DNA of 64,000 bases, taken from contig JBLDXI010000054.1 in the NCBI GenBank assembly GCA_047495785.1, positions 2,852,001 through 2,916,000 on the forward strand, in the 5' to 3' direction. Position 1 is the first letter of the stretch, and each line of letters begins with the position of its first letter. This document shows, piece after piece, positions 5,015 through 57,784 of this stretch. A program made the position numbers and the translations under genes. The notes below the pieces were generated by a model, which saw only the letters and a list, made by a program, of their open reading frames with translations, was not told the DNA's origin and did no database searches. The DNA is from Lepidodermella squamata. Lineage: Eukaryota; Animalia; Gastrotricha.

Positions 5015-5086
5015 GGTCCCATGGTGTAGCGGTTAGCACTCAGGACTCTGAATCCTGCGACTCGAGTTCAAATCTCGATGGGACCT
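5015..5086 (+). tRNA. trnQ-CTG: tRNA-Gln(CUG), copy 1
   Basis: 72-nt cloverleaf GGTCCCA...TGGGACCT, anticodon arm CAGGA-CTCTGAA-TCCTG, T-loop TTCAAAT, followed by an oligo-T Pol III terminator. Confidence 0.97.
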
Positions 5087-5133
5087 TAATTTTTTTTTCG
5101 GCCTCCTTTTTCGACATTTTTTTTTACTTCGCC

Positions 5134-5184
5134 GCATATACAAATAATTACACTTGATGTCTTGCCCTTTATCATAGATCGGCT
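5134..5184 (+). promoter_or_regulatory. Putative bipartite snRNA promoter (PSE-like) upstream of U4
   Basis: CATATACAAA at about -75 to -66 and AGA[AT]CGG[CT]T at about -34 to -26 are kept in all five otherwise divergent tRNA-U4 spacers. The proximal element also precedes the truncated U4 at 11211. Confidence 0.55.
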
Positions 5185-5209
5185 TCAGCTCATATTTTCG
5201 TTGATCTTT

Positions 5210-5347
5210 AGCTTTGCGCAGTGGCAGTTCCGTACTCAGTGAGGTGCAAACCGAGAGGCGGAAATTGCTAATTGAAAACTACCCCAATTACCCGCTCTGA
5301 GGACCTACGGGTCCGCTGTAGCACTTTCTGGAGCCCCACAAGGGGCT
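5210..5347 (+). ncRNA. RNU4: U4 spliceosomal snRNA, copy 1
   Basis: Starts AGCTTTGCGCAGTGGCAG (U4/U6 stem II); k-turn stem-loop CTC-AGT-GA-GGT-GCAA-ACC-GA-GAG; TTGCTAATTGAAAAC (stem I); Sm-site region ACTTTCTGG; 3' hairpin AGCCCC-ACAA-GGGGCT. Confidence 0.95.
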
Positions 5348-5604
5348 TTTGAACATCAAAAACAAAAATCAAGTCTGGCTTTAATTCAAATTTTGCCACA
5401 AGTTTAACGAAGCGTTAAGTCAGCCGTATATCTTATTTTTTTCTAAAAATCTCCTGTACCAAAAATAATTGAATTAATCAATAACTTGATATCAGCCCCT
5501 GAAACTAAATTTTCCGCTTCGTTTAATAATTATTTTGGCTCTGATAATAATGTCTGTCTCCAGGTTCAACCATTTATTTCCCGGTGACTAGCATTTTGGG
5601 AAAA

Positions 5605-8237
5605 ATGAGCTCAAATAAACTTTTTAGAGATTTGTCCCTCACGTTAGCGTTAATTGCGGTTTTGGTCTCCTGTAAAGTTCGGTCGCATAAAACCGATGAA
5701 ACTTTCTACGACGAACCGAATGGAGCTAATGAAAGTGAGTTGTACATCAACAGCGAACAAGTGGAGGATTACGACCCGAAACCATCGACACCGGCTCCAA
5801 CTGTCAAGCCCGTGCTGGCCAATCTGATGAAGCGGGGACACAACGTCGTGAATCTCCTGTTAAAGAAAATTTTCTGGAATTATAACAAGGAAAGCATCCC
5901 TAGCAGGTGAAATCGCTGCTATTAATTAAAAAACAATTACAATTTCTTTTTGAATTTTCAGTCCCGTTGAGGTCCACATGGATGTATTGCTGCTCAAGGT
6001 CAAATACACTGTGGAAAAGGAGGGAATTTTCGAATGCGTTATCGCATTGATGATGGTAAAATAGCCCGATTCTATCTCCATCATAAAATTTCTATTTCAA
6101 ACAGGAATGGAGCGATCTTCGGATGTCTTGGTACGAAATATTTCAACTGTGCTTTTAAATGACTAAAATATGGCTAATCAGGGATCCTAAGGAGTACGGC
6201 AATGTTTCTGTTTTAGCTTTTGATTCCGATCGGGTTTGGCTCCCGGATATAGCGGTATTTCTTAATTTTAAAAGTTTGATACAAATAATTATTGTTATTT
6301 TTATTGAAGATGACCAACTCAGGTGACAAGGCTCGCTTATACTTTATTTCAAAGTATCATCGCCAATTTTGTTACAGCCGATCACATCTATTCGATTTCG
6401 AGAGATTCGCGGTTCATAGTGCGCGTAACCAATAATGGAGTATTCAAGTTCGTCCCTACAGGTCAAATATTTCAAAAAAATTCACGAATTTTAACTAATA
6501 TTTTTTTATCAACCAAAGGAACTGCTCGAACTTGGTGCGGTAAGGAACTTTCGTTTTTTGAGTCATTTTTTGAACGTTGGTCTTTTAGATCTGAAATTGT
6601 TGACTTTTCCCTTCGATTATCAAGAGGTGAGTTTATTCTTACTTTACCCTGCAGCGAATTTGATGACTTTTTTGTAGTGCTCGTTGGAGTTTGAAAGGTA
6701 ACTGGATGTTACTAAGATTGATCTCAGTTCAATAGCTGATTTCCGCTGGTCTCTCGACATGACAGCCCTGACATTTGATAACAAAAGCAATTTGCTAGTC
6801 GACGATTCTTTCGCGTCTAATCAGTTTTTCCTGTGCGAAAAGAATGTTTCGGTAAGTTTCATCGATTGTATAAATTTCGACTTGAGACTAATTTTGAACA
6901 ATTTCCCAGCGATATTACCATACTTACGAATTTACTGGAGAGACATTTTCGAGGCTGAGATTTGACTTCAAAGTTTGTTTCATTTATATAAGAGACCACC
7001 TTAATTGGGAAATGATTCAAACAGGTTCGCCGGAAGAGCACTTTTTACATTATCAACTTGATTTTTCCAGTAAGGTGGATTTTTTATTTTCAATATTTTA
7101 TTGATTTTTTGCTTTTTTAGTGTGCCACCCTATCTGCCATTCAATTGCTTGTTTTCTTGATCTCGAGTACCGATACTACAGCCGATAGGATAGGTTTCGG
7201 AACTACCAACCTGCTTACTCTAGTCGTGTTCCAGGTTAGGATAATTCCTCAGAATTTTCTTTCTAATTTCCTTTCCTTTTCAAGACCATTGTGACAGAGG
7301 AAATGCCGAGAACTTCGAACGCAGTTACAACGCTGTCCAAGTACATAATCGCCCTGATAGTCATAGCAGCCATCGGAATTTTCGAATCAGTCATCGTCGA
7401 ACGCATGTACTGCGAAACATCGCAATACCCACCTCCGAAATTCATCCTAACCATACTGAAGCACGTACCAATTCTGGGCTACGGGAAGCATCACATGACG
7501 CTGAAGAAGATGCACAAGCATAAGGTAAACAAATGAAGTGAATCCGATACTTATAGAGAGTAATCTTACTTTCTTCATTTCAGAAGCATCTTAAGAAATC
7601 TACTGCAAAACTTATGAAGAAGGCGATAACGTTCGACAGTGGGTTGTGTGAAAACAGTCCATCTAAAGGGAGTATGGAGAAGGAACGGAATGGTCTGAGT
7701 AATCACCCAGTTGGTATCAATGAACTAGAGTGCGACATCAACTCCATGAGCCAAAGAAGGAATTCCTATCATTACGCAGTTACGACTGGACTAGATCCTT
7801 GTTCCCAACAAACTATCCCGATTATTCAATCCCAAAATGGAGTTTCTGTAAGTTTGGCTAATAATTCTGACACTGGTACGGTCATCAAACACGGAGAACT
7901 GACAATCCACCTAAATTTCATCATCTCAAAATCTGCGGAGACCATCGGCGCAAGAAACGAGGAGGGTGATTCTGGGCCGAAAAGCATGAGTAGAGCTTCT
8001 GCATACGAAGACTGTGACGATACTGAATTCCTGAGAATCTGCCGTCACAACGCCCGTCTCTGGACGAGCTTCGCGTTGAAAATCGATTTTCTCACCTTCG
8101 TCGGATGTCTGACGGCGGCTATTATGGCCCCGCTTATGGCTTTCTTCCCGCTATTGGACTTCCAGGAAGGCTGCTACGACGAGGCTGGAAAACTTGCGGG
8201 ATTCGCAAACGAAACCCGACACGTTGATTCAGGATGA
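5605..8237 (+). CDS. Cys-loop ligand-gated ion channel subunit (nAChR/5-HT3-like, no vicinal loop-C cysteines)
   Basis: Signal peptide; WLPDI; spliced Cys-loop C-DLKLLTFPFDYQE-C; RRKSTFYIINLIFP before M1; M2 ADRIGFGTTNLLTLVVFQ; MPRTS; long M3-M4 loop; IDFLTF M4. Many short exons. Confidence 0.9.
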
Positions 8238-8377
8238 CATTTTATTTTTTTCTTGCATAACAAATTAACGATTTGCATGTGTTAGTTTCAAGCGTAAAGA
8301 GTTTTGTAGAACGTGATTAGCATCATCCTATAGAAATGTGAATAAATTATCATCGAATCATCTCTAACATCTAAAGC

Positions 8378-9296
8378 TTACTTTGCCAAACAGGAGCTAC
8401 CAGAAGCTCGCACTGCCTCCAGGAAGCCCAGCCAGTTTTGAGGCGTTTTCATGAGTTCTTCTCTTAGAGCGGCCATTCTGTCTTCTGAAGTCTGTTTAAA
8501 GGGATCTTATATTATCAACAATCTATTCCTCAAGGTCGGTTCCAAACCTTTCTATCGAAAATCTTAGCAATCTCTTCACTAGAGAACACGCTTTGATCTG
8601 TCAACTTTCCTCTCAGCGGACCATTGCGAGACAAAATCTCTAACAGCAAAGTGTCAGCATCGTCTAAAGCAGCGTTCAAAGCAGTTGAGAAGTGCTCCTT
8701 TCTGTCACCAGCCAAAATTCGATCAATTTCAGTTTTTTGACACGCTTGATACCACTTGATGTAGGGAGAATCTTCCATCATAGCGGCCTGGAAGTAGGCT
8801 AACCTTTCACCCAGATGCATGCAATGGAAAATTGCCAACAATGAGCTGTAAACTGCAAGTTTAACTTCTGATTCATCGTCGCCTTTTGACCGGCGTCGAC
8901 AAGTGCTTAGAATAGCTTCTTCAATCATTTTGCCCAAACTCTCCAAACCGCCACACCGAGCAGCTCTAGCCAGACCGACAAGCATAACATCATCCATGTT
9001 TCGAATGAACTCGCAAAGGACAGACTGGGCATTCTGACAGCCGTAGGTTTCGAAAATCAGTTCGATACTCTCAACATGGAAAGAATTATCATCGAGATGC
9101 GAGAGGGCCTTGACGAGTTGTATAGGATTGTACACGGCCTCGTCAAATTTGGCCAGAACACCACTTTGAAAGCAACCGTGCATTGTTTTGTTAAAACCAA
9201 GAATTTTCGTCAGAAACAAGTTTTTATTCTAAACAGCAACCCGAGTTTGATAAGAACTCTCTTATCTCTTGCGCTGCGTCTTGCACGTGCGATGTA
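8378..9296 (-). CDS. Hypothetical helical protein with possible C-terminal CARD/death-fold domain (5' end unresolved)
   Basis: 229-aa ORF bounded by GT-AG introns. Splicing out 8492-8547 adds a 38-codon last exon giving LTDQSVFSSEEIAKIFDRKTSEDRMAALREELMKTPQNWLGFLEAVRASG. Confidence 0.55.
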
Positions 9297-9562
9297 CTGG
9301 AAAGATTAGCGGTTGAAAAATCACGGCGTTCACAAAATTGTAAAAATTCAGACCGTGAAAGGTCGACTTAATGTTTGGTTGATGTGATACGTTTAAGCGG
9401 GAATGTTTATCTAGTACAGCCTCATCATTGAAGTTTGCCTCTCATCGTACCAACTGCAAATATTTACCTGCCTAAGCCAGTTGAGACCAAAATTTTGGCT
9501 AGTATTTTTTTGTGCTGGTAATACCTATTATTATGATGAGATTTTGTTAATCTTTCGCAACG

Positions 9563-10468
9563 ATGTTGGCAGTTTTTCTGCTTGTGATTAGCGTTCAGCT
9601 TACTGTAGGGCAAGAGTGCAGCGCGAAATCGGTACTGGACTTGACCAAAAATAAGTATCCGCCCGGGACAACACTTTCCGTTTCCTGCCCTTCATCTTCA
9701 ACCCCGGCGGTTACTGTGTCCACGTGCAATGCAAACGGAAGGTGGTCACCATCAAGACCATTTAGAGCTTGCAAAGGTATCTAGTATTCCCTAAATATTA
9801 TGATCACATTGATTTTTTTCAGTTTTTGAACCGGCAATAAACCGCAAGCCTACGAGGAATAACTATGATTACGATGTAGACTACGACCGCTGGGCAAGAC
9901 CGCCTGCTTCTCTACCTTACTCTTCCCAACCACTCTCGTGCAGCTGGCCTACTATAGCTCCTTCCTACGCCAGAGGCGTGAAAATCTCAATTGACTGCCC
10001 TTTCGGCTACATCGCCGGGAACAACACTGTCAACAAAACAACAACATTATCCTCTACAACTTGCACTAGTTACGGAAATTGGACAATCGAATTGGCTAAG
10101 TGCACAAGTCGGTCATGCCTAAATATATATCACTTAAACATTCAGTCCTTTTCATATTCCATACAGGCTATCGAAATCAGCCCTGTGTAATGCCCGAGAC
10201 TCCTAAGAATGGCTTGGTTTATTCGCATTCTCCGACCCTGGGAGGCAGTCCGAAAGGCGTCATTCAGTTCAGCAAGGGAAGCTTCATTAGGTAAGGAAGC
10301 GATAAATCGATCCCTCCTCCTTGCATTATTTTACGGAATTTGCTTCCCAGATACGAATGCATCGATGGGTATTTTCTGTATGGACCGAGGAGAATTAATT
10401 GCTTGGCTGACGGGGAATGGTCAACTGACCCTCCGCGCTGCGAACGCCATACGAGATCGGGGAAATAG
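9563..10468 (+). CDS. Small secreted Sushi/CCP-domain protein (three CCP modules)
   Basis: Signal peptide MLAVFLLVISVQLTVG; TCNANGRWSPSRPFRAC, TCTSYGNWTIELAKC and YECIDGYFLYGPRRINCLADGEWSTDPPRC; four exons. Confidence 0.85.
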
Positions 10469-10564
10469 ATCTTAACAAAGAAAATCATAGAGGATAAACT
10501 CAACGATTAAAAATAGCAATAAACGGCAAATACAGGAATTGCAACTTTGTTTTAGGTATTCACA

Positions 10565-10702
10565 AGCCCCTTGTGGGGCTCCAGAAAGTGCTACAGCGGA
10601 CCCGTGGGTCCTCAGAGCGGGTAATTGGGGTAGTTTTCAATTAGCAATTTCCGCCTCTCGGTTTGCACCTCACTGAGTACGGAACTGCCACTGCGCAAAG
10701 CT
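10565..10702 (-). ncRNA. RNU4: U4 snRNA, copy 2
   Basis: Reverse complement of copy 1 apart from one T/C in the GGACC[T/C]ACGGGTCC hairpin. Confidence 0.95.
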
Positions 10703-10822
10703 AAAGATTATCTAACATCGAAGCAGGAGCCGTTCTATGACGAAGGGCAAGACATTAAGTGAAATAATTTGTATATGCTGTGAAAGTAAAGAAATGTCTA
10801 AGAGGAGGCCGAAAAAAAGTGA

Positions 10823-10894
10823 AGGTCCCATCGAGATTTGAACTCGAGTCGCAGGATTCAGAGTCCTGAGTGCTAACCGCTACACCATGGGACC
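10823..10894 (-). tRNA. trnQ-CTG: tRNA-Gln(CUG), copy 2
   Basis: Identical 72-nt sequence on the minus strand, followed by a T-run. Confidence 0.97.
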
Positions 10895-11008
10895 GCTTGA
10901 AAAACTTGGTTGCATATACAGTTTTGATATCTCTATAACGCAATTCGTGGAATAATGTCTCGCTCATCAGTTTATTCCCGTCAGATCAAATTGTGACTAG
11001 CATTATTC

Positions 11009-11187
11009 TTATGTGAACAAGATCAGTGGAGTTATTGCTATAAGAGCTTTGTGCCGATTTCTTATCGAATTGTGGAACGCTGGATGTTCAACATCCTTAG
11101 GAATATTGGGGAATTTTAAACGAGCAGGTGAACATCTTGGGGAACGAACCTCTCCTGGAAGTATTTCGCTGATCCGTTTCTCGTTCA
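11009..11187 (-). pseudogene. 3' fragment of a glycosyltransferase gene (copy of the end of 18336-19334)
   Basis: Reverse complement closely matches about 19156-19334, including the intron and the DVEHPAFHNSIRNRHK exon. Similarity continues through the 3' flank to the tRNA. Confidence 0.85.
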
Positions 11188-11211
11188 CTGCGCCTGCCTC
11201 TGCGGAAAGCT
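11188..11211 (-). pseudogene. Truncated, degenerate U4 5' fragment
   Basis: AGCTTTCCGCAGAGGCAG (2 mismatches to the U4 5' end), preceded by AGAACGGCTCCAGCTTCGATATTAG, which matches the proximal upstream sequence of intact U4 copies. Confidence 0.7.
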
Positions 11212-11257
11212 AAGGGTCTACTAATATCGAAGCTGGAGCCGTTCTTTAACGCCTCTA

Positions 11258-11740
11258 AGAGTGAAATTCACTTTGACACGTGCAGCTCTCGTGGAAGCCC
11301 CACATGGACCGCACCCTGAGCCGCACCCTGAGCCGCACCAAAATCTCTCTTGGTACCATCGTTTGGCGCCCTGGGCTCACTTTCTGCTGGCGTCATGCCA
11401 GATACCTCGCTCACATCCGCTCGATGGCGACTTTCGGCTGCGCTGTACAATTTTCGTCCGCTATTAAGCAAAAAGCAACACCTGCGCCGCCTCGTCGTCC
11501 TCAAAAACAATTTCCTGCGTGCTATGCTTAAAGTTCGCCTCGCTGACCGCGTTCGCATCACCGAACTCGAGCGGCGATGTCGCCTGCCCGGCCTTTCCGA
11601 GTTTTTCTCCCTGGTTCTAAGCCGCACGCCTGCCGCCATGTCCTATCTCTCCGATTTCTGTTTCTGTTTACTCTCTGTCTTCACCGCTGTTCTAGCACTT
11701 GCGTTCCCCTTCTCATTCACCTACACCCGATAAAACGTTT
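11258..11740 (+). mobile_element. 5'-truncated non-LTR retrotransposon (LINE) ORF2 3' remnant
   Basis: Frameshifted reading LSWKPHMDRT...YLAHIRSMATFGCAV / LRRLVVLKNNFLRAMLKVRLADRVRITELERRCRLP matches the post-RT region pattern of LINE ORF2. Confidence 0.65.
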
Positions 11741-11963
11741 AGCTGGTAAAAATTCCATCCTTTTGCCTCCCCACCAGCGTCGAACTGTGTCAGACAATCG
11801 CGCGTGCTCGCGTTGTGCCGGCGCCTTCTTGTTTTTTGTCTGCTTTTGAATTTATTTAATTTGTATGTCAAATGAGGACAGCAAAAAAAGATTTTCGTTA
11901 CGCTCAACGAAAATCTGCAATTCTCTAGTTTGCTCAAATGATGAGCGCAGAGAAATTTTCCCT

Positions 11964-12979
11964 TCAACTGAATAAGATTAAGGGCGAGACCATAATTCGC
12001 GCCTTATTGCGCTTTTTGATCGAATAATGGAAGGAAGGATGCTCGACGTCCTGAAAGAAAGCAATCAAATCTTCACTTGTATTTTTATATAAAATTTTAG
12101 CCTCACCTCCCGCATTTCGAAGTCACTGAGCTTCTTTTCAGGCAGATACGCATTATAGTATCCGCCAAAGGTTACATTCATCTTGTAGATCGCAAATCCA
12201 TTGAAAGCTGAATCGACTTCGAAAAACCCACTTGGGCCAATTGAATTCAATGTACCATTAATGTTTCCCATGAATACAGAGTTCATGGGATCGCCATTGC
12301 CCCAATCATTGCTATTCCAGCCGTTGTAACGCAGTGCCCATAAGTCGTAGTAGTACGGCCTGTTGAAACTCACCACGTCCCATTTATCAGAATTTTTCAT
12401 GACAAAATCTAATTTTGTTAGATTGGCACGACTGTGTGCCGTAGTGTCATCCATGTCGATGGTTGCCATGTAATCGAAATCAGCGAAATGGCGATGGACG
12501 AATTGGAGCAATGTATTGCGCCCGATTGCTATGCGCCAACACCGGACCGGAAAGCACTCATGAAGATGGTCGACAATGATCAAGCTAAAACGAGGGGACA
12601 ACCTCTTCTTATGAAGCTTTAACTTGGCGAGAGTGCCATCCTCTGAATCGCTCACGAAAATAACGAAATGACAGTCCGCGAAAGCGCTGCATACTCTTTC
12701 CATTTGCACTATTGTCCTGTCGACATATTTTACAATATTTTTCGCCATGCCGGTAATAACAAGGCGGGGCGAGTTATTCTTCCGGTGACGCATTTCAGAT
12801 AAACCTGATTTGCCTGTTTCCGCCAATAATTCAAGCGAAGCCTGCTCAACCGCCGGCTGCGTTTTGTAGTGACACTGTAACCACGAGAAACAGCGAGTGG
12901 TAGCATTCAATATGTATTTTGATCCCGCTATAAGGAGGAACAATTTAACGATATAAACGAGAAGCGAATTTGAGCGCAT
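11964..12979 (-). CDS. GT-A fold glycosyltransferase with N-terminal membrane anchor (GT-1)
   Basis: ITGMAKN, SDSEDGT, RIAIGRN, DxD motif IDMDD, YYDLWALR, VDSAFNGFAIYK; intron 12051-12106, then DVEHPSFH...LILFS*. Confidence 0.85.
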
Positions 12980-13240
12980 GACGTTTTTGTATTTGGTTCA
13001 TAGGTATTCAGTTTGGTCATAACAGTGTTTCAGGGAGGCTTGGTTAAAATGAAATAAACACTTTGATATTCAGATACTAACCGTTATAAGGTGCAGCACG
13101 ATTGCGATGCGATTGTATTTAGTAGCTAACGACATTCTTAACATCTCGCGCAGCGAAGAGAAATGCTTATTTTCAGACGTTGCGAAATTGTTAGCAACAT
13201 GCTATTCCAATGGATTGTCGCAGATTATTTGTTATTCAAA

Positions 13241-13378
13241 AGCCCCTTGTGGGGCTCCAGAAAGTGCTACAGCGGACCCGTGGGTCCTCAGAGCGGGTAA
13301 TTGGGGTAGTTTTCAATTAGCAATTTCCGCCTCTCGGTTTGCACCTCACTGAGTACGGAACTGCCACTGCGCAAAGCT
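13241..13378 (-). ncRNA. RNU4: U4 snRNA, copy 3
   Basis: Same sequence as copy 2. Confidence 0.95.
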
Positions 13379-13497
13379 AAAGATCAACTAATATTTATGC
13401 TGAAGCCGTTCTATTCTGAAGGGCAAGACACCAAGTGAAATAATTTGTATATGCGGCGAAGTAACAAAAAATGTCTAAAAAGAGGCTGAAAAAATTA

Positions 13498-13569
13498 AGG
13501 TCCCATCGAGATTTGAACTCGAGTCGCAGGATTCAGAGTCCTGAGTGCTAACCGCTACACCATGGGACC
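13498..13569 (-). tRNA. trnQ-CTG: tRNA-Gln(CUG), copy 3
   Basis: Identical 72-nt sequence followed by a T-run. Confidence 0.97.
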
Positions 13570-14154
13570 AGATATGGATTGCAATTCGTTGGGCTTATCT
13601 GTATTGAATCTGATTATCAACCGACAAAACGTTCACGATCGGCTATTAATACGTAATATTAAATGCCCTTTAGTTATCGGAATATTTTACACCTCATATT
13701 TGATGTGGTTGAATTTGAGACGTTAGCTGATTGCTTTCCGATTAGACTTAATGGATATACTAGGGGTATTATTTTACAGAACAGATTGCGACATTTTGAT
13801 ATTAAATAAGTGTTACCTTTCCTAGCATGAGTAAAATTTCCAGCAAAGGAACGTCCATAAATTTAGTTCAACATTGTGTTCAAGGTAAAAAGCGCAAAAC
13901 GGATGTTTTTAGCGCATATACCCCTAGGCCAAATATATGTTAGGGCTATATGTAATTATATGTTTACATAATTTTACATAATGGACAGTTGATTTTCACA
14001 TATTGGACAGTTGATTTTTTAAGGAGGAGCACATATTGGACAGTTGTCTATTGTTCAGACCCATGAAACTCAAGAAACCCAAGAAACCCGTGGAAACCAA
14101 AATAGCTTTATTATTCAAAGTCAATTGAGCCCTTCACAAAGTTGTCGCAGCCCG

Positions 14155-14420
14155 AAAACCGAGCAGCATTCAGTCCAAATTTTGACAAATCGAGCAGCAA
14201 TCGGCCCCAATGTCGTGAATATCAAACAGCATTCAGCCCCAATTTCAACAAAATCGAGCAGCATTCCGTCCAATTTTCGACAAAATCGAGCAGCATTCCG
14301 TCCAATTTTCGACAAAATCGAGCAGCATTCCGTCCAATTTTCGACAAAATCGAGCAGCATTCCGTCCAATTTTCGACAAAATCGAGCAGCAATCGCCAAC
14401 ATTTCGTGAGATTGAGCAGC
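14155..14420. repeat. 32-bp minisatellite, about 8 units
   Basis: Unit AAAATCGAGCAGCATTCCGTCCAATTTTCGAC; CGAGCA recurs at 14255, 14287, 14319, 14351, 14383; outer units degenerate. Confidence 0.92.
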
Positions 14421-15093
14421 ACTCAGCGGCAATCTTCCAGCACCCAGAACTCCACCGGGACAATCGAGGCATCCAAGCAGCAGTCGTCATCAATGTTGAG
14501 AAAATCGCGCAGCATTCCCCCTCGAAATTGCCAAAACAGCGCCGTATTCGTCTTGTTTTCCGTGCCATTCCATCAGCCTTTGTTCCTGGCTCCAACTGGT
14601 TCAACGGCACTCTTCCTCGAACGGGATCGATACCATGATTGAGCTTGAGATCGACAATGACCAGATCGGCGACTAGTTGCCATGAGTCGAATTCACTCGC
14701 CAGGTTGATTTGATGAGCCGACAGTTCAAATAGCTCGAGCCATTGTGCGATTCTTCATCGTAGCAGCGTGCCAGTTTGACGCGAAGATCCGGCGGCAAAA
14801 AAGCGAGTGAAAATCAAAACGAAAATCGACCGAATGAGCGTTTGATTTAAAAATGGCGAAAAGCTCAGTTTTTGATGAAAAATTAAGTTGGATGTTTTAT
14901 TTTCCCATTTTCCATGATAACCTCACAAATAATGTCCTCGCCTGCGGCTCGGCCATTATATGTTCGGTTTTTCAACATATTTCCTCCTCTATGTCCAATA
15001 TATACACATAAATACCACTGATAAGATCAGCCTGCTATCATTTCAAGATTTAAGGGGCTTCGTCGCTAAAAAATTATTTTGAAGTACAATTCC

Positions 15094-18077
15094 ATGTTAT
15101 TCAATTGTCTTCACTTGCTAATCTTAAAGTATGCGTAATATTTTTTTTGCATCGCCTTTTTTCAATAACTTTTCAACCATGAGGAATGTTTTAAAGTGGT
15201 TTTCACCAGTCGATAGATCTAGTCTGCGGTAAACTTTCCTCAAATTTTCATTTGAATTGGGTGCGAGAGAAAAAATTGGTGACGAAAATTCTGTCCGCGA
15301 TTTTTATTGAAAATTCTCATTTTTGAAAAATGGCATTTCACAGGATTTGAGGTTGGAAGACATCCTCCTGTTGAAAGGCTTTATCGGAATTTTTTTTAGC
15401 AGGAAATTAGGTCAATAACGCACCGTCAACAAGGAAATTCGACTTAGCGACCACAAAGAAGGTCTTATCCACCAAACGCGATCCGAAATGAATTTTCGGA
15501 ATTTTTTGAGTGATTTGTGTCAATTTTATGAAGCCTTCAGTTTTGGATAGTTGTACAATGTTCTTTCAGGAATCAGTGACGTAGATCCATTACGGACCAT
15601 CCTCTCAAAAAAACTCGAAGCCTCTGGCAAGAGAGACAATCAATTCAGACCAAATAAGATGCAAAAATAGCATTTTTCAAAAATGAGAATTTTCAATAAA
15701 AATCGCGGACAGAATTTTCGTCACCAATTTTTTCTCTCGCACCCAATTCAAATGAAAATTTGAGGAAAGTTTACCGCAGACTAGATCTATCGACTGGTGA
15801 AAACCACTTTAAAACATTCCTCATGGTTGAAAAGTTATTGAAAAAAGGCGATGCAAAAAAAATATTACGCATACTTTACTTCTTCGCGTTTGTATTGCAA
15901 CAAGCGTGAAAGAGAAAGTTTTACAAATGATTGCACTGGTACCAATGACTGGCTACCAGCCGCGTGATGGAAAAATGTGTATGACGGCGATGCAGGTGGC
16001 TGTCAACGAGGCAAACGCAAAATCCGATTTTCTGCCCGAATACCGCGTAGAAATTGCATTCAGAGATGAAGGCCCTGGAGGAGCCTTTAGCCCACGGCAT
16101 CTTATCAACTTCCTTAATACTCCTAGAAACATAACTACTGCTATGTCTCCTATAATTTTGGGCAGTTTCTTTCAGTGCCAAACTGCACACGATATTGCTC
16201 GTGAAAACTACATGGCCATGATAAGTCCCGGCTGTTCAGGCTATCTTCTACTCGATCGCAGCAGGTATCAGAACCTTTACCGAACAATGGTCCCTAGCGA
16301 CTTAACCAACGAAGTCCTGATTCAAATAATTAAAAAAGTTGGGAAGTGGCGTCAAATCGGCCTCGTTCTTAATGCTGTGAACCTCAACATTTTCGCCCTT
16401 GGCAAATCTTTTTATGACAGAGCTGTTAGCAAGGGTATCGAAATTGTCCAATTTACAATTGTAACCGATATAACAGATGAGACTATCGATTCGATTATTC
16501 AAAGCAAAGCTCGAATTATCAAACTGCTGATTGTTGAAATTCCTCTGGTCGTCAAATTTATCTGCCTAGCCTATGCGAGAGGACTTCGAGCACCAAAGTA
16601 TGTCATCATGACCCCGTATACAAACTACGTTGATCCGCTAGCTGCTAGCCTGCAACTTCCTGCTGGATGCAATCGGAGAATGATTGCAGACCAAATCAGG
16701 ATCACGCTGTATCATGGCGCTGCTACAATGCCTATTCGTAATTTTGGTCAAACAGATCTGGGCTACGACCTCAGCGGCTATACGACACGTTTTGATTCGC
16801 TGACGAGCGGATCTCGCCTCCCCGACTATGAGATCAGTCCTTACTGCCACGACTCAGCGGTACAAGCTCTTGTAGCCCTTCACAACGCTGAAATGAGACT
16901 CAGTGCGAGAAATTTGACGCTAATGCATTTTCGCGATAACCCGGCAGAAGTCTTTCGGGTAGTCAACCAAACAATAGCCGAGTCGGATTTCATTGGCATC
17001 CGGGCAGGTCGTCTGAAGTACTCGTCTCGCCTCGAGTTCGAATACGAAGAAATGTATTTAATACAACGCACGGCAGGTGACAACCCAAGAATAGTTGGGA
17101 CAATCGTTAAGAATGAATCGTCCACCGATTTTTCATTCGTCAAAAATTCAAAAGCTGTTTGGGTAACTGCAACTGGTAAATCGCCAAAAGATCTCTCGCA
17201 GGTGCTTCAAATAGAAGTCCGTATAAATCCAAGTATACCTCCTGCAATCCTAAGCTCAAGTTTGCTGGTAATAATCACTCAGTTATTCATAACCGTGTGG
17301 AAAATCCGTGAAAGGCCGACTGTGGTAAAATATTTGGATGTAAGCTTTTCTTGTGGCTGTTCCATGCTGAACGTTGCTGCTGTACTTCAGACATTAGAGT
17401 TGACCTCCAATGTGATTTGCGTAGCTCGGGAATCTCTCCTGCTGTTGGGGTTATCATTACTCGTATCAGTAATGCTAGTTCAAGTTTTGCAGCTGAAGAT
17501 TGCACAGCGTGAACGGTCGGCTTCAAGCACACTAAGCCGCTACAATTCGATTGGTCGGAAAGCAAAAAATCGCTGCTACATTGAGGTTAGGCCACAAACA
17601 GTACCTAAAGGAGTCGTCACTTCTTCCGTTTGCTTTATCTTTTTCAACATTGCAATGTATGCAGTTCGGTCCTTTTCGGATCCAATCGCAGTTATGATGG
17701 ACCAAAGTGCAATCGAGTTTAACCAGGAAGTGGATAACTACATCCAGCTTAACGTCAAAACATGTTCTTCTGAGCATCTTAGCCTTTGGTTGGCCACATT
17801 TGCCTGTCTACATGTTTTGTTGCTAATTACAATAAGCTCGCTTCATTTTCAGATGTCTCAGCTGAAATTTATCACAGAAAATGGAGCGATATACAGTGAA
17901 GCTAGATGCCATCGCTTAGCCTCTTGGAATTTGACTATTCTTCTTACCTTCGGTGCGTTTCTAGCGGTAGTCGTGCCTAGTGACGCGTCATTTCAAGCCG
18001 CGCTATTTAGCTCTGTGCTACTGGTTGTATCTGCATCTTCGAGTTCCATATATTTTAGTTGGAAATTGACGAGCTAA
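15094..18077 (+). CDS. Class C GPCR, GABA-B-receptor-like (Venus flytrap domain + 7TM), signal peptide interrupted by a MITE
   Basis: 723-aa ORF with AVNEAN..DFLPEY, LLDRSRYQNLYRTMVP, SPKD before TM1, no Cys-rich domain and seven hydrophobic segments. ATG 15094 joins in frame once the element at 15127-15876 and one TA are removed. Confidence 0.85.
15125..15878. mobile_element. MITE / non-autonomous DNA transposon with long perfect terminal inverted repeats and TA target duplication
   Basis: 15125-15332 is the reverse complement of 15671-15878 (208 bp including the flanking TA); 338-bp non-coding core. Confidence 0.93.
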
Positions 18078-18335
18078 AACCATTTTTAGGTGGAATGAAG
18101 ACAAATATCGGAAATTGCCCGAATAATCTAGTGAAGTAAACTTGAGATTTAATATGGGAATATGTGAAAGATAAGCACCTTTCTCGCGGATTAGGTAACG
18201 CAGGTAAAGCCACGTGACAATAAAGGCTCACTTTTCAGTTGCGCAACATGCTTAACAACCAAGCCTTGGTGTAACAGCGCGTGAGAGCGCCATCTATGGA
18301 ACATTGAACTGTTACAGTTAAAAGAGACTGAGCAG

Positions 18336-19334
18336 ATGTACATTATCGGCTGTTTTGCATTTTTCAAATTTCTGCCCTTCATCGCAGCCTCTGTGCCCCT
18401 TTTTAATTTGATACGCTGGGTATTACTTCTGAAATGCCACTATGAATCGCAGGTGGCCTTGGAGATGGCATCGTTTGAACTTCTTTCTAATCGTAATGAT
18501 TATAAAGAGGCTAAAGCCGTCGAGAACGCACCTCGTATAGTAATTACTGGCATGGCCAGAAACATTGCTAAGCACGTGGACGGCACATTCGCTCAAATCG
18601 AAAAAATATGCAGCGTATTCCGAGATTGTCACATCGTCATTTTCGAGAGCGACTCAAAAGATGGCACCCTCGAAAAATTGAGACAGCAACAGGCGAAGTT
18701 TGCTAATCGGGTGAATGTAATCTCAGTCAGTGGACTCGACTATTGCCTATGGGCCCGAACGTTTCGTTTAGCTAAAGGTCGAAATACGCTTCTTCAATTT
18801 GTGCATCGCCATTTCACAGATTTTGATTACATGGCTATGATCGACATGGATGAAACGACAGCGGCTAGAGATGTGAATATTACTGTTTTAAATTTCACCC
18901 TCAACAATTCTGATCGGTGGGACGTTATAACCTTTAACAGAGCTTCTTACTACGACATCTGGGCGTTGCGTTATCGCGGTTGGGATAGCAACGATTGGGG
19001 CAACAGCGATCCTCGAAATTCTGAACTTCAGGCCAATATATCCCATACGTTGGAATCGATAGGACCGCATGAATTTCTATACGTCGATTCGGCATTTAAT
19101 GGGTTTGCGATCTACAAGATGAATTTCACATTTGGAGGGCATTATGCTGGCTATTTGAACGAGAAACAGATTAGTGAAATACTTCCAGGAGAGGTTCGTT
19201 TCCCAAAATGTTCACCTGCTCGTTTAAAATTTTCCAATATTTCGAAGGATGTCGAACATCCAGCGTTCCACAATTCGATAAGAAATCGGCACAAAGCTCG
19301 AATAGCAATAACTCCACTGATCCTGTTCACATAA
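18336..19334 (+). CDS. GT-A fold glycosyltransferase (GT-2)
   Basis: Same motifs as GT-1 (FESDSKDGT, RLAKGRN, IDMDE, YYDIWALR, VDSAFNG, DVEH). A 54-nt in-frame GT-AG intron at 19194-19247 sits at the paralogous position. Confidence 0.85.
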   Translation: MYIIGCFAFFKFLPFIAASVPLFNLIRWVLLLKCHYESQVALEMASFELLSNRNDYKEAKAVENAPRIVITGMARNIAKHVDGTFAQIEKICSVFRDCHIVIFESDSKDGTLEKLRQQQAKFANRVNVISVSGLDYCLWARTFRLAKGRNTLLQFVHRHFTDFDYMAMIDMDETTAARDVNITVLNFTLNNSDRWDVITFNRASYYDIWALRYRGWDSNDWGNSDPRNSELQANISHTLESIGPHEFLYVDSAFNGFAIYKMNFTFGGHYAGYLNEKQISEILPGEVRFPKCSPARLKFSNISKDVEHPAFHNSIRNRHKARIAITPLILFT

Positions 19335-19439
19335 GAATAATGCTAGTCACAATTTGATCTGACGGGAATAAACTGACATTATTCCACGAATCGCGTTATA
19401 GAGATATCAAAACTGTATATGCAACCATGTTTTTCAAGC

Positions 19440-19511
19440 GGTCCCATGGTGTAGCGGTTAGCACTCAGGACTCTGAATCCTGCGACTCGAGTTCAAATCT
19501 CGATGGGACCT
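19440..19511 (+). tRNA. trnQ-CTG: tRNA-Gln(CUG), copy 4
   Basis: Identical 72-nt sequence followed by a T-run. Confidence 0.97.
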
Positions 19512-19627
19512 TCATTTTTTCGGCCTCATTTTAGAGATTTTTTACCTCGCCGCATATACAAATGATTTCATTGGCGGTGGGTCCCATCATTACAGAACGG
19601 CTCCTGCTTCGACTTTTGTTGATCTTT

Positions 19628-19765
19628 AGCTTTGCGCAGTGGCAGTTCCGTACTCAGTGAGGTGCAAACCGAGAGGCGGAAATTGCTAATTGAAAACTAC
19701 CCCAATTACCCGCTCTGAGGACCTACGGGTCCGCTGTAGCACTTTCTGGAGCCCCACAAGGGGCT
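19628..19765 (+). ncRNA. RNU4: U4 snRNA, copy 4
   Basis: Same sequence as copy 1. Confidence 0.95.
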
Positions 19766-20512
19766 TGTGAATCCGATACAAATTTTCAAGACATTGGGAA
19801 TCTTCAAATTCATTTGCGGTCATTTGCTGTGATAAGACAACGCGGCTCTAAAACTCCAAATGATTTTTATTTTCAATTTGTACTTAAATTTGTTGGAACA
19901 GAATTAAAAGAAAAGATTTAGTCTTAATATCGGGGAAGTGAGGCGCTTACTTAGTTTGGCATTAGGAACCAGACTGCTAAGGCAAAATAACAAAACAAAT
20001 CATCCTATATAAAAATCACTGTGAGAGCGCCCTGCTCTATTTTGCAGGAAAATTCCCACAAAAAAATTATCAATAAAAACAATGAACTTTCGCTATCACG
20101 CGTTTCTTTCGCCATAACGCTGTGCAACCAGCTACATATTCCATTATCCGTCATAAGATTGCAAGAAAAATCAAAATCTTGCTAATCACGTGATTGCACA
20201 GGAAACAAGATTTTCCCCCAAAAATCATCCAAGCCACAGCAGACGACAATCAGTCAATAATGAGGCATATACCCCATAACGCTATTGGCCTTCAAGGTGC
20301 CCTTGCCATTGCAAAATAAGATAGCAAACCGTTGGAATAATATTTGGCAAATTCGACTTACTAAGCGGCATTAATAGAGGTTTCAGCTTCCAAATAATCT
20401 GTCTGTGTCGCAGACAACTGCACCCTAACGATTGTCTGACGATCGTCTCATTTTAACCAAGCCTTCCCACAGCACGTTTACTAGTCCTTTGACCAAACAT
20501 TGCAAAAACATA

Positions 20513-21537
20513 ATGCGCTTGACTTGGCGTCTAATTAAATTTTTTAAATTGTTTCTTGTCATAGTGGGATCTAAGTACGTCTTAAGTGCCAGCTTTCGCT
20601 GCTTTTTATGGATACATTGCCACTACAATACGCAGATGGCAATTGAGAATGCATCGCATGAATTATTGGACCATCGCAATGCAATTAAAACAATCATAGA
20701 TGATACATCTAACGTGGACAACCAGAGGAAATACTTGCCCAGTCTTGTTATTACCGGCATGGCAAAAAATATTGTAACGGAAGTAGACAGGACAATAGCG
20801 CAAATGGAGAGAATATGCAGCTTATTCCATGATTGCCACATCGTAATTTTCGTGAGCGATTCAGCTGATGGCACGATCGCCAAGTTGCAGTATCATAAAA
20901 AGAGATTGTCCCCTCGTTTTAGTTTGATAATGGTTGACCAACTTCGTTACTGCTTACCGATTCGATGTTGGCGCATAGCAAAAGGGCGCAACACCCTGCT
21001 CCAATTCGTCCATCGCCACTTCGCTGATTACGATTACATGGCAACCATCGACATGGATGACACTACGGCACACAGTCGTGCCAATCTAACAAAACTAGAT
21101 TTTGTCATGAAAAATTCTGACAAATGGGACGTTGTGAGTTTCAACAGGCCGTACTACTACGACTTATGGGCACTGCGTTACAACGGCTGGAATAGCAATG
21201 ATTGGGGCAATGGCGATCCCATGAACTCTGAATTCATGGGAAACATTTCTGGTACATTGCATTCATTGGGCCCGAGTGGGTTTCTGGAAGTCGATTCAGC
21301 TTTTAATGGATTTGCGATCTACAAGATGAATTTCACATTTGGCGGGTATTATAATGCGTTTCTGAGTGAAAAGCGACTAAGTGACTTGGAAATGCGGGAG
21401 GTAAGTTGATATTATATAGAAATGCTGAGATGATCATTTTGTTTTAGGACGTCGAACATCCTTCCTTCCATTATTCTATTACAAAGCGCAATAAGGCGCG
21501 AATTATGGTCTCACCCTTAATCCTATTCGACAGCTAA
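20513..21537 (+). CDS. GT-A fold glycosyltransferase (GT-3)
   Basis: ATG 20513 (MRLTWRLIKFFKLFLVIVG); same motifs; intron 21401-21447; last exon DVEHPSFHYSITKRNKARIMVSPLILFDS*. Confidence 0.85.
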
Positions 21538-22152
21538 TGGTATCGGGAGTTGATGATTTTTTACTCCGGACAGCAATCATATCCGGATCTCGATTGATCG
21601 TCCTTCAGCTCGCATATAGCTAGCCTTCAGGCCGAAATCCACCGTTGTGATATCCTCCAATGATACACATATTGCATAATATAATTATTTCAAGCCTTCA
21701 ACTCTCTCATTTTGCCCTATGGGATCTATTAGCACTGCTCAAATACACTTCGAAAAATATGGCATCCACGTAAAAAGGAATGAGTGTCGATCGCTCTTGG
21801 TTGTTTTGTGAGAAAGATAGTCTCAGCCATGTCTCAACACTCCTTTAAAGCTCCAACAATTCAACATCAAACTCCAACATCAAAAAGGATCTAAGAAATA
21901 AATTGTTGGTTTATTGTTATACCTTTGCAGCGATGTGCTTTACGAATAGTTCCGTTATATGGCTAAGCAAGCAATTTCATGAATGCGAAAAAAAGAAATA
22001 TAATGCAAGTCATTTGTTGTTCAAGACGGAAGAATAAATTGAGGTAAAATGAGTTGGAGCTTTAAACCGCGCCGGTCCCATGATTTAGAAGATGGCCGAG
22101 GAATTATTACATCTGAAAGTTGTATTCTAACTCCAGGTCATGTTTTTCAAGC

Positions 22153-22224
22153 GGTCCCATGGTGTAGCGGTTAGCACTCAGGACTCTGAATCCTGCGACT
22201 CGAGTTCAAATCTCGATGGGACCT
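22153..22224 (+). tRNA. trnQ-CTG: tRNA-Gln(CUG), copy 5
   Basis: Identical 72-nt sequence followed by a T-run. Confidence 0.97.
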
Positions 22225-22346
22225 TCATTTTTTTTTCGGCCTCCTTTTTATACATTTTTTTTACTTCGCCACATATACAAATTATTTTACTTGATGCCTT
22301 GTCCTTCAGAATAGAACGGTTTCCGCTTCGATCTTAGATAATATTT

Positions 22347-22484
22347 AGCTTTGCGCAGTGGCAGTTCCGTACTCAGTGAGGTGCAAACCGAGAGGCGGAA
22401 ATTGCTAATTGAAAACTACCCCAATTACCCGCTCTGAGGACCCACGGGTCCGCTGTAGCACTTTCTGGAGCCCCACAAGGGGCT
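22347..22484 (+). ncRNA. RNU4: U4 snRNA, copy 5
   Basis: Same sequence as copies 2 and 3. Confidence 0.95.
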
Positions 22485-41200: not shown

Positions 41201-43645
<2,445 letters not shown>

Positions 43646-44233
43646 TATGCTTGGATGCGAAAAACAAACCGGGCGATGTATTGTTTTACATATTTCCTGA
43701 CCAGCAAAATGCGAAATGTAAATTCCCTATAGATAAAATGAGACAACGTTTTTAGCGTACAGAAAATATGAAAAGAACAGCCTTTTTATGTACATTGCTT
43801 AGTATAACATAGAACATCTATAAGGCATTAAATTCAATTATAATCCACGCAAAATTCGCCATTATTATTATTACTGTTATTATTATCATCAGAACAAAAT
43901 GAGCACACTCGCATTTATGAAAGGGCATCGTAAAAAATGAAAAGACGCAAAAATCGATAAAAAAAATATGATTACAAATATATTTACTTCTTGTTGCAAA
44001 GCATAAAAAATGAATGAGCAAACCGGTACCAGAACGCAATAATTTCACTCGAAATAACTTTTTGAACCAGATAACCAAGGTCATCAAACACAACGCGCAT
44101 CATAAAGGCCAAATTTGGCAGGAAATTACAATTTTTTATGCAAAATTTTTGAAGCAGGGCAAGGAATGTTTAAAAAACTAGCATCTTGTATCACAAAAAT
44201 TGATGTCATTTTTATGGGAGGTAAAAAGCGAGA

Positions 44234-46048
44234 TCATTGCGAAATTTGCGCGAGAGGAACCTCGAGCTGTGAATGTTCTTCCTGGCATTGCTCAGCCGAG
44301 GCTTTCAGCTTATCAGGTGTCGCTCCTATTTTAGCCATGTAGGACAGAAACTGGCGCGGTATTTCAGCCATTACTTCTCTGAAATTCAAGATAGTTTTTT
44401 TCAAGCTAGAAATTTGAAACTGAGTAAATATTAATATTTACCTAGCTAACTCCACCTGCGCCATCGCCCAATTATTTCCCGTTCGATGGAGAATTTTCGA
44501 AAAGGGCACAAATTGAACAATATCCCGCTCCATGCGACGGCCTTTTTCAGTTTTCAACGGATTAACATCAGCATCCAACACCTCCATATCCGTAAAATCC
44601 GCATGACCAACGCCGACAATGATAATTGAAATCGGCAGCGAGCTAGCGCTGATTATAGCTTCGGTTGTTTCTTTCATGTCAGAAATAACGCCATCGGTTA
44701 GAATTAGTAGGACAAAATACTCATGACCGTCCCTCTTCTCATTCGCGTAGTTAAACAATTGCCGGATGATCGGAGCGAAATTTGTCGGTCCGTGCAGTCT
44801 TACACGCTGCAAAGCACCCCTATAAGCCTGCATAACTCCATCAACTCCCTCGCAAAACGGATTTATCTCATCACCATTCTAAAATATTAAGGAGGGATAA
44901 ATATTTTTATGGAAAAATTCGAAAATTTACCAAGAAAAAGCAATGGCTAGGCCGCCAATTCGGTGGGACCAGGGCGCCAAAACCAAGAGCGGGGAACATT
45001 TTATCGCTATCATAGTCTTGAATAATCTCCAAAACAGCCCGCAAGGCCATTTGGTACTGATTTGGGCCATTAGGGTTGTTAAAATGAAGGGAACTAGGAT
45101 TTTCCGGCGGTCCATTCGAGGCTGTGAAATCAATCGCGGCAACACAGTTCAGTTGAACGCTTCTGTAAAAAAAATCGAAAAAAATCCTCCTTAATCATTC
45201 ACATTTTCAAAATTAACGAACCCGCGAGAGACAAAATCGAGAAAAGACATATTTGCGTCCTTATTGATGCTGACCAAATGCAGCGTAGCGCCTTCGCCCA
45301 TCGCATAGGTGTTTCTCGGGTGATTAGGGCCCATATTTAGAACTCCGACGGTTGTATTGACGGAGCCAACCATTTTATGGGCGCCATTTGTCTTCGCCTG
45401 CCATACTGCGATTCGAATCACCCGATCGATATCGCCATTGCATAGCGTGAATGAATTGACTTTACATAGTGGCCACGTGACTGTTTTATCACCCGGGACG
45501 ATGCGGCTTCGATATGCGAGTAGTTCCCCGCCTTTAGGGATGGTTTTAAAAATTTCAAGAAAATACGACCTCTCGCCGCTGAACAGCTTCTTCGGCAGAT
45601 TATTGACGCAAAATTTGATGATGAATGACTCCTTAAACGCGCCCATTTCCTCGGCAACTATTGTCATAAGGCCTACTTCGTTGTTTTCGTCCATCAATGG
45701 CTTTTCATAGACCCCCGAGCCGCTGCATCTCACAATTTCAGCCAAAGGACCATCGACCGAGCCCAGGAAGTCAACATCCTCATGCTCCTGATCAAAGTCG
45801 TAGAGCTCGAAGCGTAATAATTGCCGCTCTTCGAATAAATAAGTCGCGTCGATTTTTTGCGAGAAACAAGGCCGGAAAGTACCGCGAAGAACCTCTGTTC
45901 GACCGATTTCGCTCCAATCATCGGTAGAGCCGGGTTTTAAACTGTAAACAACGCATAGCAAATTCAATTTTTCTTCGCCGGTTTGTTCTCGAAACAGCTG
46001 GCAAGATATCGATAACTCGACAGCACTCGAAGCCGCTGGGGGTGCCAT
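44234..46048 (-). CDS. CPNE: Copine, paralog 5
   Basis: [44 protein letters not shown]; last exon EVMAEIPRQF...ISQ*. Confidence 0.94.
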
Positions 46049-46228
46049 ATTATCATCCCTTTTATCTTAACAGTCTAAAGAAAGAAGACAACATGGGTAT
46101 ATAATTGAGATCATAAAATTTGAAATCAAACGAGATAATATCACAGCCCGATAAAGTTGACCGCTATTTTGAGAGATTGAAATGGGGGGTGATGAACTCA
46201 AAAATTTAGACACAATTTTTAAGGTGGG

Positions 46229-48006
<1,778 letters not shown>

Positions 48007-48245
48007 TTTTTTAACTAAAATCTAATTAAAAAAAAATCAAAACCAGAAATTAAGCGTAATTTACGCGAAAGAATCTGTACACCATCGCATCACAATGAAG
48101 CAGAGAAGCATCAACAAGGAATTTCAAAAATGAAAAGCTAAGCGTAGACCAACTAACAGCAGTTTAACAAGCCAATGAGTAAATACATCGAATGAGCATG
48201 CATAAATAAAATCATCAAAAATGATCGAAAATAACGGTATTATGG

Positions 48246-50676: not shown

Positions 50677-51025
50677 TTCGATGTTTAAAAAATCTAAAAA
50701 AATACGAAAAATTTCACAAAAAATAGCATTTAATGGGTTGAGAACAATTGATCCGGTTAAAACTCATATATCATGGATAGGTAAATATCACGAAGCCCGC
50801 AACAAAATAAGCAGTTTTACAAAATATACGAGTGCGCAAGAATAGAATAGACTATAAAAAGGGATTGAACTCTTGAGAGTGCAAATTCGATGTTAAAATT
50901 TCCAAAAATCTATCTTAAGAGTATATAGGGAATGCACTTTTAGTAATGCAGCACAGTTGAATATACTCGCGATTTTACATTATAAAAAAAATTAAGACAG
51001 CTAAAAATAAAGCAATTCATTCGAT

Positions 51026-52897: not shown

Positions 52898-53157
52898 GAC
52901 GACGGTGACAAATAGTAATATTTAAACAGGGGTAGTGTATAAAAATAATCTACCAGAAAAATGTGAAATTCGTGCAATTAAAAGCTGAATTTATGGCATA
53001 TGTAAAATGATATATCGAAAAATCGTTGTGCAAGCAGCGTTGTATAGAAAAACTAGAACTATAAGAAAAAGAGCGATAAAAGGTCCCACTTTCGACACCT
53101 TTTACATTGCGGAAGCGTAACAAGATTTAAAAATATATGTCGGGTGTAAAAACTGGG

Positions 53158-54843
<1,686 letters not shown>

Positions 54844-55948
54844 CTAGGCAAAAAGCAAAAGACAATCAACCTAATTGAAAAAAATATTTAAATGTAACTA
54901 GTACCTTTAATCGCAACGAGAATGAAGGAAGCTCGATGTAAAACACGCCTTTTGATTGATAAAAGGCCTATAAAAGAATTGTCCATTCTGTATCAAATGA
55001 CTTTCTTGAGTAAGTTGGAAAAATATAGACAGCATAAGTGCATAGTCACCACGACATTAGTATTTGCCACTAGCGTTTTGAATCTCTCGCTATTTTTTTG
55101 GTATACTATTTCCAAATCCCACCGGATTGTATATCAAAGCTACTTATTTGCGGCAAAATTTGATTAAGACGAGTGCATGAAGAACCGGACTTAGTAACAC
55201 GCTCGAATAACAATTCAAATAATATAATAGCTATTAGCACTGCCGAACCGACGCAATAGAAATAAAAGAAAAAATCACGGAAATGAACAAACGGCGCCAG
55301 GCATTAATTGAAATTAATCCAACTTGAAAATCGCAAAGTCAATCGTCAATAGCCGAAACGAAACAAACAAAACAAAAGAGTTTTATAGTATTCATGTCAC
55401 GCAAAATCTAGTGTTTACCGAAACGCCCACGACATGGCGCAAAAAACGATGATTCACAAGCTTATTAATATTTACAAGCAAAAATCATCAATGAATTACA
55501 TATACTGGGTCATCGTTGCATCGCATCATTTGTGTTCTGTATTTATTCACACGTCGCCTTCAGCCCCATCCTTTCATCGTAATCATCCCTCGCCATATAA
55601 AAATTGCACACAGTGCTTTGCGATCAAATCAGACGAGCGAGCGAGATGAATGGAAATACAATTGTAATACACATATTATATGTAAATAAAAGCAGCAACA
55701 ATATTTGAGCATGATCGATGCGTAATATTAGGGATATCGAGCAGCCACGGCGAAAAAGCAATCAAATCCTATATATCTTTTGAAAAAAAACGTCATTCGA
55801 TTTTTGTGAGTGCGCAAATACTCAACGGGACGTTTCATCTTAGTAAAACGCCACCTTAATCTCTATCTCGCCACAAATATATGGTTAAATACATCTAACG
55901 ATAACTATAAAAACGAGAATTCATAAAGCAAAATTGATTTCGTCAAAG

Positions 55949-57784
<1,836 letters not shown>

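Follow-up and report, generated by a model that had tools for sequence, protein, structure and literature searches.

A TA-targeting MITE divides the signal-peptide coding sequence of a GABA-B-like receptor paralogue in the gastrotrich Lepidodermella squamata

We analyzed a 64,000-nucleotide stretch of the Lepidodermella squamata genome (assembly GCA_047495785.1, contig JBLDXI010000054.1, positions 2,852,001 to 2,916,000 of the forward strand), which we call the window and whose numbering is used throughout. It contains a receptor gene whose leader-encoding stretch is interrupted by a transposable element, and an unrelated repeat lies a short distance upstream. The features of the locus are as follows.

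13914–15010, no strand assigned: unrelated 1.1-kb repeat with internal tandem repeats, present in many genomic copies and ending 84 bp 5′ of the ATG
15094–15126 (33 nt), plus strand: ATG and first 11 codons of the leader, MLFNCLHLLIL, with an in-frame stop 9 codons 5′ of the ATG
15125–15126, no strand assigned: left TSD copy, TA (TA on both sides in 19/19 full-length copies)
15127–15876, no strand assigned: MITE, a 750-bp non-autonomous TA-targeting DNA transposon, called from its inverted repeat, a copy search and its TA flanks
15127–15338, no strand assigned: left TIR, 212 nt, beginning AAGTATGCGTAATATT, with donor-like GTATGC (15129) and GTAATA (15135)
15339–15664, no strand assigned: central loop, 326 nt, with strong acceptor-like sites ending at 15399 (T8-AG) and 15569 (TTCTTTCAG)
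15665–15876, no strand assigned: right TIR, 212 nt, its outer end without an AG
15877–15878, no strand assigned: right TSD copy, TA (TA on both sides in 19/19 full-length copies)
15879–18077, plus strand: rest of the receptor gene (LLRVCIATS, ANF_receptor-type domain, seven hydrophobic segments, stop codon), with no internal stops
15903–15904, plus strand: AG, candidate 3′ splice site and first AG past the element, in the context GCAACAAG followed by C
Predicted empty site, with the element and one TA absent: ATCTTACTTC

Frame and stop checks were made by scripts on the joined strings, and the upstream and downstream pieces were translated and searched separately. From 15879 the frame reads LLRVCIATSVKEK... 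/ LLRVCIATSVKEKVLQM... and is continuous with a 723-aa ORF at 15906–18077. The insertion point is the TA of codon 11, a TTA (Leu). When the element and one TA were removed, the ATG-led hydrophobic 11-mer joined the 723-codon ORF in frame, and 748 codons were open; the restoration of the frame proposed in the initial annotation was thus reproduced. With the element retained, reading from 15094 ends after 14 codons. At the DNA level, therefore, the element leaves the receptor body without a start codon or leader.

The receptor ORF matched ANF_receptor (PF01094) with E = 3.8e-16 over residues 25–237, and seven hydrophobic segments could be read in the translation, for which Pfam gave no 7tm_3 match. 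We classified the receptor as GABA-B-like class C, encoded by an intronless gene. It resembles other members of GABA-B-like class C expansions, which are intronless, ~720–850 aa long, and composed of an N-terminal leader, an ANF_receptor domain and seven hydrophobic segments. Such expansions form tandem arrays with occasional pseudogenes, whereas the gene in the window is a singleton at its locus; moreover, it was broken by a transposon, whereas the GABA-B-like pseudogenes were broken by point mutations.

At least 60 intronless paralogues were scored from 1,370 first-look candidates in the same genome. The closest paralogue is 46% identical to the receptor in the window, and one of its neighbors has 10 stops. 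We compared nine paralogues, and in all of them a Met-initiated hydrophobic leader of 17–30 residues precedes the conserved K..L.MLALVP.TG; one of the nine has an earlier Met, giving a leader of up to ~50 residues. The LLRVCIATS of the window aligns with the second half of these leaders, and the reconstructed leader, at 21 residues to the conserved Lys, is within the paralogue range. The leader-encoding stretch is therefore split at a place where nine paralogues carry a leader, in agreement with the earlier suggestion that a signal peptide had been disrupted. We concluded that the MITE insertion divides the signal-peptide coding sequence of an intact-looking receptor paralogue.

The flanks of the insertion were searched for a copy of the locus lacking the element. 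The downstream flank is single-copy in the assembly, and no empty-site allele or paralogue was found with it; the upstream flank matched only another repeat family in the assembly. A protein collection searched with the full ORF and with its N-terminal 200 residues gave no matches, and none of the metagenome contigs scanned contained an exact match to a 26-mer adjoining the insertion. The 1.1-kb repeat upstream of the gene is 99–100% identical to a copy on contig C1, and the copy in the window lacks ~117 bp that are present in the other copies; the missing stretch would lie where 14918 meets 14919. Because this repeat ends 84 bp from the ATG and the MITE lies in the leader, the 5′ region of the receptor gene has been struck twice.

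The element is bounded by an inverted repeat whose arms (15125–15338 and 15665–15878) are 214 nt each with the flanking TA included and are 99% complementary. The arms differ by two mismatches (15333/15670 and 15334/15669), and the TIRs are thus near-perfect. Perfect TIRs of 208 bp had been described initially; their great length was confirmed, but they contain the two mismatches and measure 212 nt without the TA. No ORF of at least 60 aa lies inside the 750-bp element, and Rfam gave no match for it. A copy search covering the window’s own 121-Mb assembly yielded 114 matches to the element out of 184 first-look candidates. These comprised a young group of ~10 full-length copies with 94–98% identity, plus several nested or truncated copies, and an older subfamily with ~77% identity. 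The 19 full-length copies, all of them TA-flanked on both sides, have the same ends and mutually non-matching 3-bp flanks. The element is a member of a real multi-copy family, and its flanks, long TIRs and lack of an ORF of this size bear out the original call of a MITE.

In its TA TSD, long TIRs, length below 800 bp, noncoding sequence, and a copy number in the tens to hundreds with subfamilies, the element is like Stowaway-like or Tc1-mariner-derived MITEs. Its ends (AAGTATG...) look unlike the usual ends of Tc1 or mariner. The sole composite copy examined for an autonomous partner, L011, contained no transposase-sized ORF. Because no DDE-transposase partner was found, the superfamily assignment of the element stands on the TA duplication alone.

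We compared the window copy with the consensus of the young subfamily and found 15 differing positions, 11 of which were private. The loop (326 nt) accounts for thirteen of the 15 and the arms (424 nt) for only two, and the two arm differences (15156 C and 15847 G) form a compensatory pair. Older copies showed the same pattern; for example, one whose arms departed from the consensus at 8 + 8 positions had just 10 arm-to-arm mismatches. The TIR arms evolve in concert, or are selected for pairing. Concerted evolution of the arms means that TIR identity is no clock, and it was therefore unsafe to read a recent insertion from the matching TIRs, as had been done initially. Dating the insertion by divergence was likewise rejected, because a cut-and-paste element brings its earlier mutations along, so that private changes give no insertion date, and because the arms are concerted. 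The sole hint of age was that the 748-codon frame is intact, whereas the dead paralogue has 10 stops: either the insertion is young or the receptor gene is still selected.

The initial annotation had further proposed that the insertion was an intron birth in progress. The in-frame GT...AG pair on which this proposal was built does exist: the donor-like GTATGC starting at 15129 and the AG at 15903–15904 keep the frame and leave no stops, and the donor at 15135 (GTAATA) with the same AG is in frame and stop-free as well. The 56 nt before this AG contain no other AG and are in part rich in pyrimidines. Taking the first AG past the element as acceptor gave a prior chance of one in three that a pair would be in frame.

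To judge these sites against the genome’s own, we used a small sample of introns from the window and fetched loci (the copine gene array in the window, taken by eye, and filtered ORF-supported candidates), which should be read qualitatively. The sampled introns were ~46–63 nt long and AT-rich. Their donors were loose (GTAAAT, GTAAGA, GTGAAA, GTATCT, GTTCGT, GTAATT), and their acceptors consisted of a T-run followed by YAG (CAG/TAG); the acceptor filter on candidate introns was partly circular, and the unfiltered set gave the same T-run acceptors. Two candidate introns had an AAG acceptor, each with a T-rich stretch close upstream. Unfiltered ORF-only intron finding was too noisy for a consensus. 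By this measure, the donors GTATGC and GTAATA are acceptable for the genome. The acceptor, GCAACAAG followed by C, is an AAG with no T-run and fits the genome’s acceptors poorly. The internal acceptor-like sites ending at 15399 and 15569 are much better than the host AG at 15903–15904, and joining the 15129 donor to them leads to stops within 2–5 more codons.

In the predicted RNA fold, the stem reached −456 kcal/mol (shuffles −190 ± 6; z = −42), and the GUAUGC donor was paired within it. The hairpin had been thought to join the splice sites; it may indeed bring the ends of the element together, but it may equally hide the paired donor. The splicing machinery could bind the donor co-transcriptionally, ahead of synthesis of the second arm. 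The proposed intron, at 776 nt, is more than 10 times the genome’s usual length, and nine leader residues would be missing from the spliced product, among them the small-residue end (C-I-A before T-S); it is at small residues that the leaders of the paralogues end.

We then removed the element and one TA from all 19 full-length copies in turn, and a long ORF was restored in the window copy only. The other 18 copies gave spans of 39–162 codons with no gene-like continuity, a test that is weak for very short exons. Examination of other MITE copies, which had been recommended as a check on intron birth, thus gave 0/18 restored ORFs, and on this basis the family is not introner-like.

Introners are transposon families that create introns, recognized as many near-identical copies annotated as introns in unrelated genes (Gozashti et al. 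2022, PMC9860276; review PMC11282704). Some introner families bring their own 5′ site and take the 3′ site from the host (PMC9860276; PMC11282704). The element in the window is like them in being a short non-autonomous DNA element with TIRs, a TSD, and a donor-like motif at its end. It differs in that removal restores an ORF for only 1/19 full-length copies, the acceptor taken from the host is weak, and nine codons would go with the intron.

Another route by which an exonic element can leave RNA is known from nematodes. Rushforth and Anderson are said to have described in 1996 the removal of Tc1 from mutant pre-mRNAs. SOS splicing in C. elegans excises exonic Tc1, Tc3 and Tc4 from 90–100% of host mRNAs (Zhao et al., Nature 2025, PMC12779559), and it also acts there on the remnants of non-autonomous elements (PMC12779559). 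The trigger is ITR base-pairing, which is both necessary and sufficient, and the process is independent of the spliceosome (PMC12779559). It needs AKAP17A, CAAP1 and the ligase RTCB, and it operates in human cells too (PMC12779559). SOS junctions are mostly non-GU-AG, with several cut sites near the repeat ends, and the products are in frame only in part (2% for Tc3::unc-22); function is rescued only where small indels are tolerated, in poorly conserved regions (PMC12779559).

The insertion in the window has much in common with these cases. Like SOS-spliced Tc1, Tc3 and Tc4, it is a TA-flanked cut-and-paste element whose inverted ends can pair, and it occupies a coding exon in an animal. Like other SOS substrates, which include non-autonomous derivatives, its outcome would be set by the frame and by how well the site tolerates small indels. 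Its inverted repeats are predicted to pair, with the fold energy given above, within the coding sequence of a predicted exon. In this genome we found RtcB (PF01139; 425 + 85 bits, C54:2216172-2217519) and the CAAP1 domain (PF15335; 30.5 bits, just over the curated cut-off of 25). An exon-by-exon six-frame search for the AKAP17A RNA-binding domain (PF25015), which had no positive control and can miss a domain, gave no match at E = 10. The present case differs from the C. elegans elements in being known from DNA alone and in having repeats of 212 nt versus 54 nt, four times longer; it also differs from the SOS system in its short-intron host, where 2/3 core factors were detected.

What happened at this locus can be read in several ways. 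A TA-targeting 750-bp MITE with 212-bp inverted ends jumped into the TTA of codon 11 of the receptor gene and split its signal-peptide coding sequence, so that at the DNA level the frame runs for 14 codons to a stop and the receptor body is leaderless. In the reading that we favor, this would be an ordinary insertional loss of function, presumably young enough for the ORF not yet to have decayed. The insertion has probably left a dispensable paralogue with a null or strongly weakened allele, and not with a nascent spliceosomal intron, with loss of function inferred from the continuity of the frame on removal of the element, the leaders of the paralogues and the premature stop when the element is retained. 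The large size of the family (at least 60 paralogues), some of whose members are already pseudogenes (one with 10 stops), and the second transposon 84 bp 5′ of the ATG point the same way. Two observations count against this reading: the 748-codon frame is fully intact, which fits a very young insertion or selection on a working gene, and the removal of 90–100% of exonic Tc elements in C. elegans (PMC12779559) suggests that partial rescue could be common. Under the main alternative, the paired 212-bp ends would form a hairpin that is cut near its base without GT-AG sites and rejoined by RTCB, and some working receptor would be made; a share of the products may keep the frame and gain or lose a few leader residues, a change that the hydrophobic core may tolerate. 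We regard buffering of this SOS type as a tentative possibility. Published ITR-driven excision in worm and human cells (PMC12779559), the near-perfect 214-bp stem in a coding exon and inside the leader peptide, the RtcB (425 bits) and CAAP1 (30.5 bits) matches, and the intact receptor ORF all argue for it. It is weakened by the absence of a PF25015 match, in a search that could miss it, by the imprecision of the process, which often leaves most products out of frame, and by the second transposon upstream of the ATG, given that transcription of the receptor gene is only presumed. The stronger claim that the insertion is tolerated, with SOS-type excision from most transcripts and a leader that is slightly altered but working, seems to us unlikely.

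Removal by the spliceosome of 15129–15904 (or 15135–15904), 770–776 nt, as a nascent introner-like intron that leaves a shortened leader in frame would place the gene in a well-documented class, that of transposon-derived introns (PMC9860276, PMC11282704). Each of the two donor/acceptor pairs keeps the frame and avoids stops, GTATGC and GTAATA are inside the local donor range (GTAAAT, GTATCT, GTAATT), and the AG is the first available after an AG-free stretch. Nonetheless, the AAG acceptor lacks the genome’s typical T-run, splicing to either of two better internal sites runs into stops, the donor lies base-paired within the stem, the length of 776 nt compares with a typical 46–63 nt, 0/18 other full-length copies restore an ORF on removal, an in-frame pair had a chance of one in three, and the product is short of nine leader residues. 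We therefore consider this reading highly unlikely, and the idea of an intron being born here was not upheld. If the element leaves the RNA at all, SOS-type excision would be likelier than GT-AG splicing. It is more improbable still that ATG 15094 is not the true start, so that the element would sit in a 5′ leader or outron, translation would begin at 15927 or trans-splicing would bypass the element, and the insertion would be harmless. The AG at 15903–15904 just 5′ of the ORF is what such an arrangement could use. However, the counterpart of Met 15927 in the paralogues is a conserved residue inside the protein (L.MLALVP), 9/9 compared paralogues begin 17–30 residues (one up to ~50) further 5′ with a hydrophobic leader, and the reconstructed leader of 21 residues is inside their range. 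Moreover, a protein starting at 15927 would lack a signal peptide for its ~430-residue extracellular domain.

A null or strongly weakened allele thus remains our preferred explanation. As such, the insertion is a known kind of event, a textbook transposon insertion in a coding exon within a large, fast-turnover receptor family. It is also a ready-made natural test case for the RNA-level fate of an exonic MITE, and because a signal peptide may tolerate small indels, rescue would be easy to read out. If buffering of the SOS type does occur here, the locus would be an example of natural transposon buffering in the wild, outside nematodes and cultured human cells. Such buffering could be the first step that lets exonic MITEs persist until they are converted to true introns.

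Copies of the MITE elsewhere in the assembly included two pairs, one on contig C66 (L007 and L008, 79 kb between them) and one on contig C3 (L016 and L017, 17 kb between them). Separate insertions were rejected for both pairs, because sequence and flanks were identical within each. The two pairs are segmental duplications. Another copy, L011, was composite (coordinates prefixed G000 are those of the window's own assembly):

G000:C54:87825-89449, composite MITE copy: a single inverted-repeat arm, followed after ~870 bp of foreign sequence by a 542-bp stretch of the MITE

This copy lacked a transposase-sized ORF; therefore, it reflects either nested insertion or rearrangement of an element.

Upstream of the receptor gene lay a repeat of a family other than the MITE's:

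window 13914-15010, 1.1-kb repeat with internal tandem repeats at 14044-14642

A copy of this repeat on contig C1 was 99-100% identical, and numerous further copies were 82-93% identical. At its 14918/14919 junction the window copy was missing ~117 bp that were present in the other copies; those copies also had a palindromic end, in that their final ~92 bp matched in reverse too. According to an Rfam scan, the receptor locus was also surrounded by five U4 snRNA genes, all of which had a tRNA gene as partner (window 5015-22484). The receptor family itself included a dead member, L041, flanked by the window receptor's two closest paralogues (46% and 44% identical to the window gene):

G000:C54:1782001-1783743, dead receptor-family member with 10 in-frame stops

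Real splice sites for comparison were drawn from the window's copine genes:

window 42600-57800, minus strand, tandem array of ~5-6 copine genes (C2-C2-copine), whose introns are short (52-63 nt)

Among the published SOS-splicing factors RtcB, CAAP1 and AKAP17A (PMC12779559), we located an RtcB ligase gene (G000:C54:2216172-2217519) and a short CAAP1-domain match (G000:C33:1858094-1858198). An assembly-wide, exon-by-exon six-frame search, which can miss such a domain, did not detect the RNA-binding domain of AKAP17A.

Compared with the consensus, the window's MITE had 13 differences in the loop and two in the arms, the latter forming a compensatory pair (window 15156 and 15847, mirror positions 30 and 721 of the element). 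Within older copies, arm changes were common to both arms. These sequence comparisons, which took in the window copy and loci L001-L010, indicate concerted evolution of the MITE's arms.
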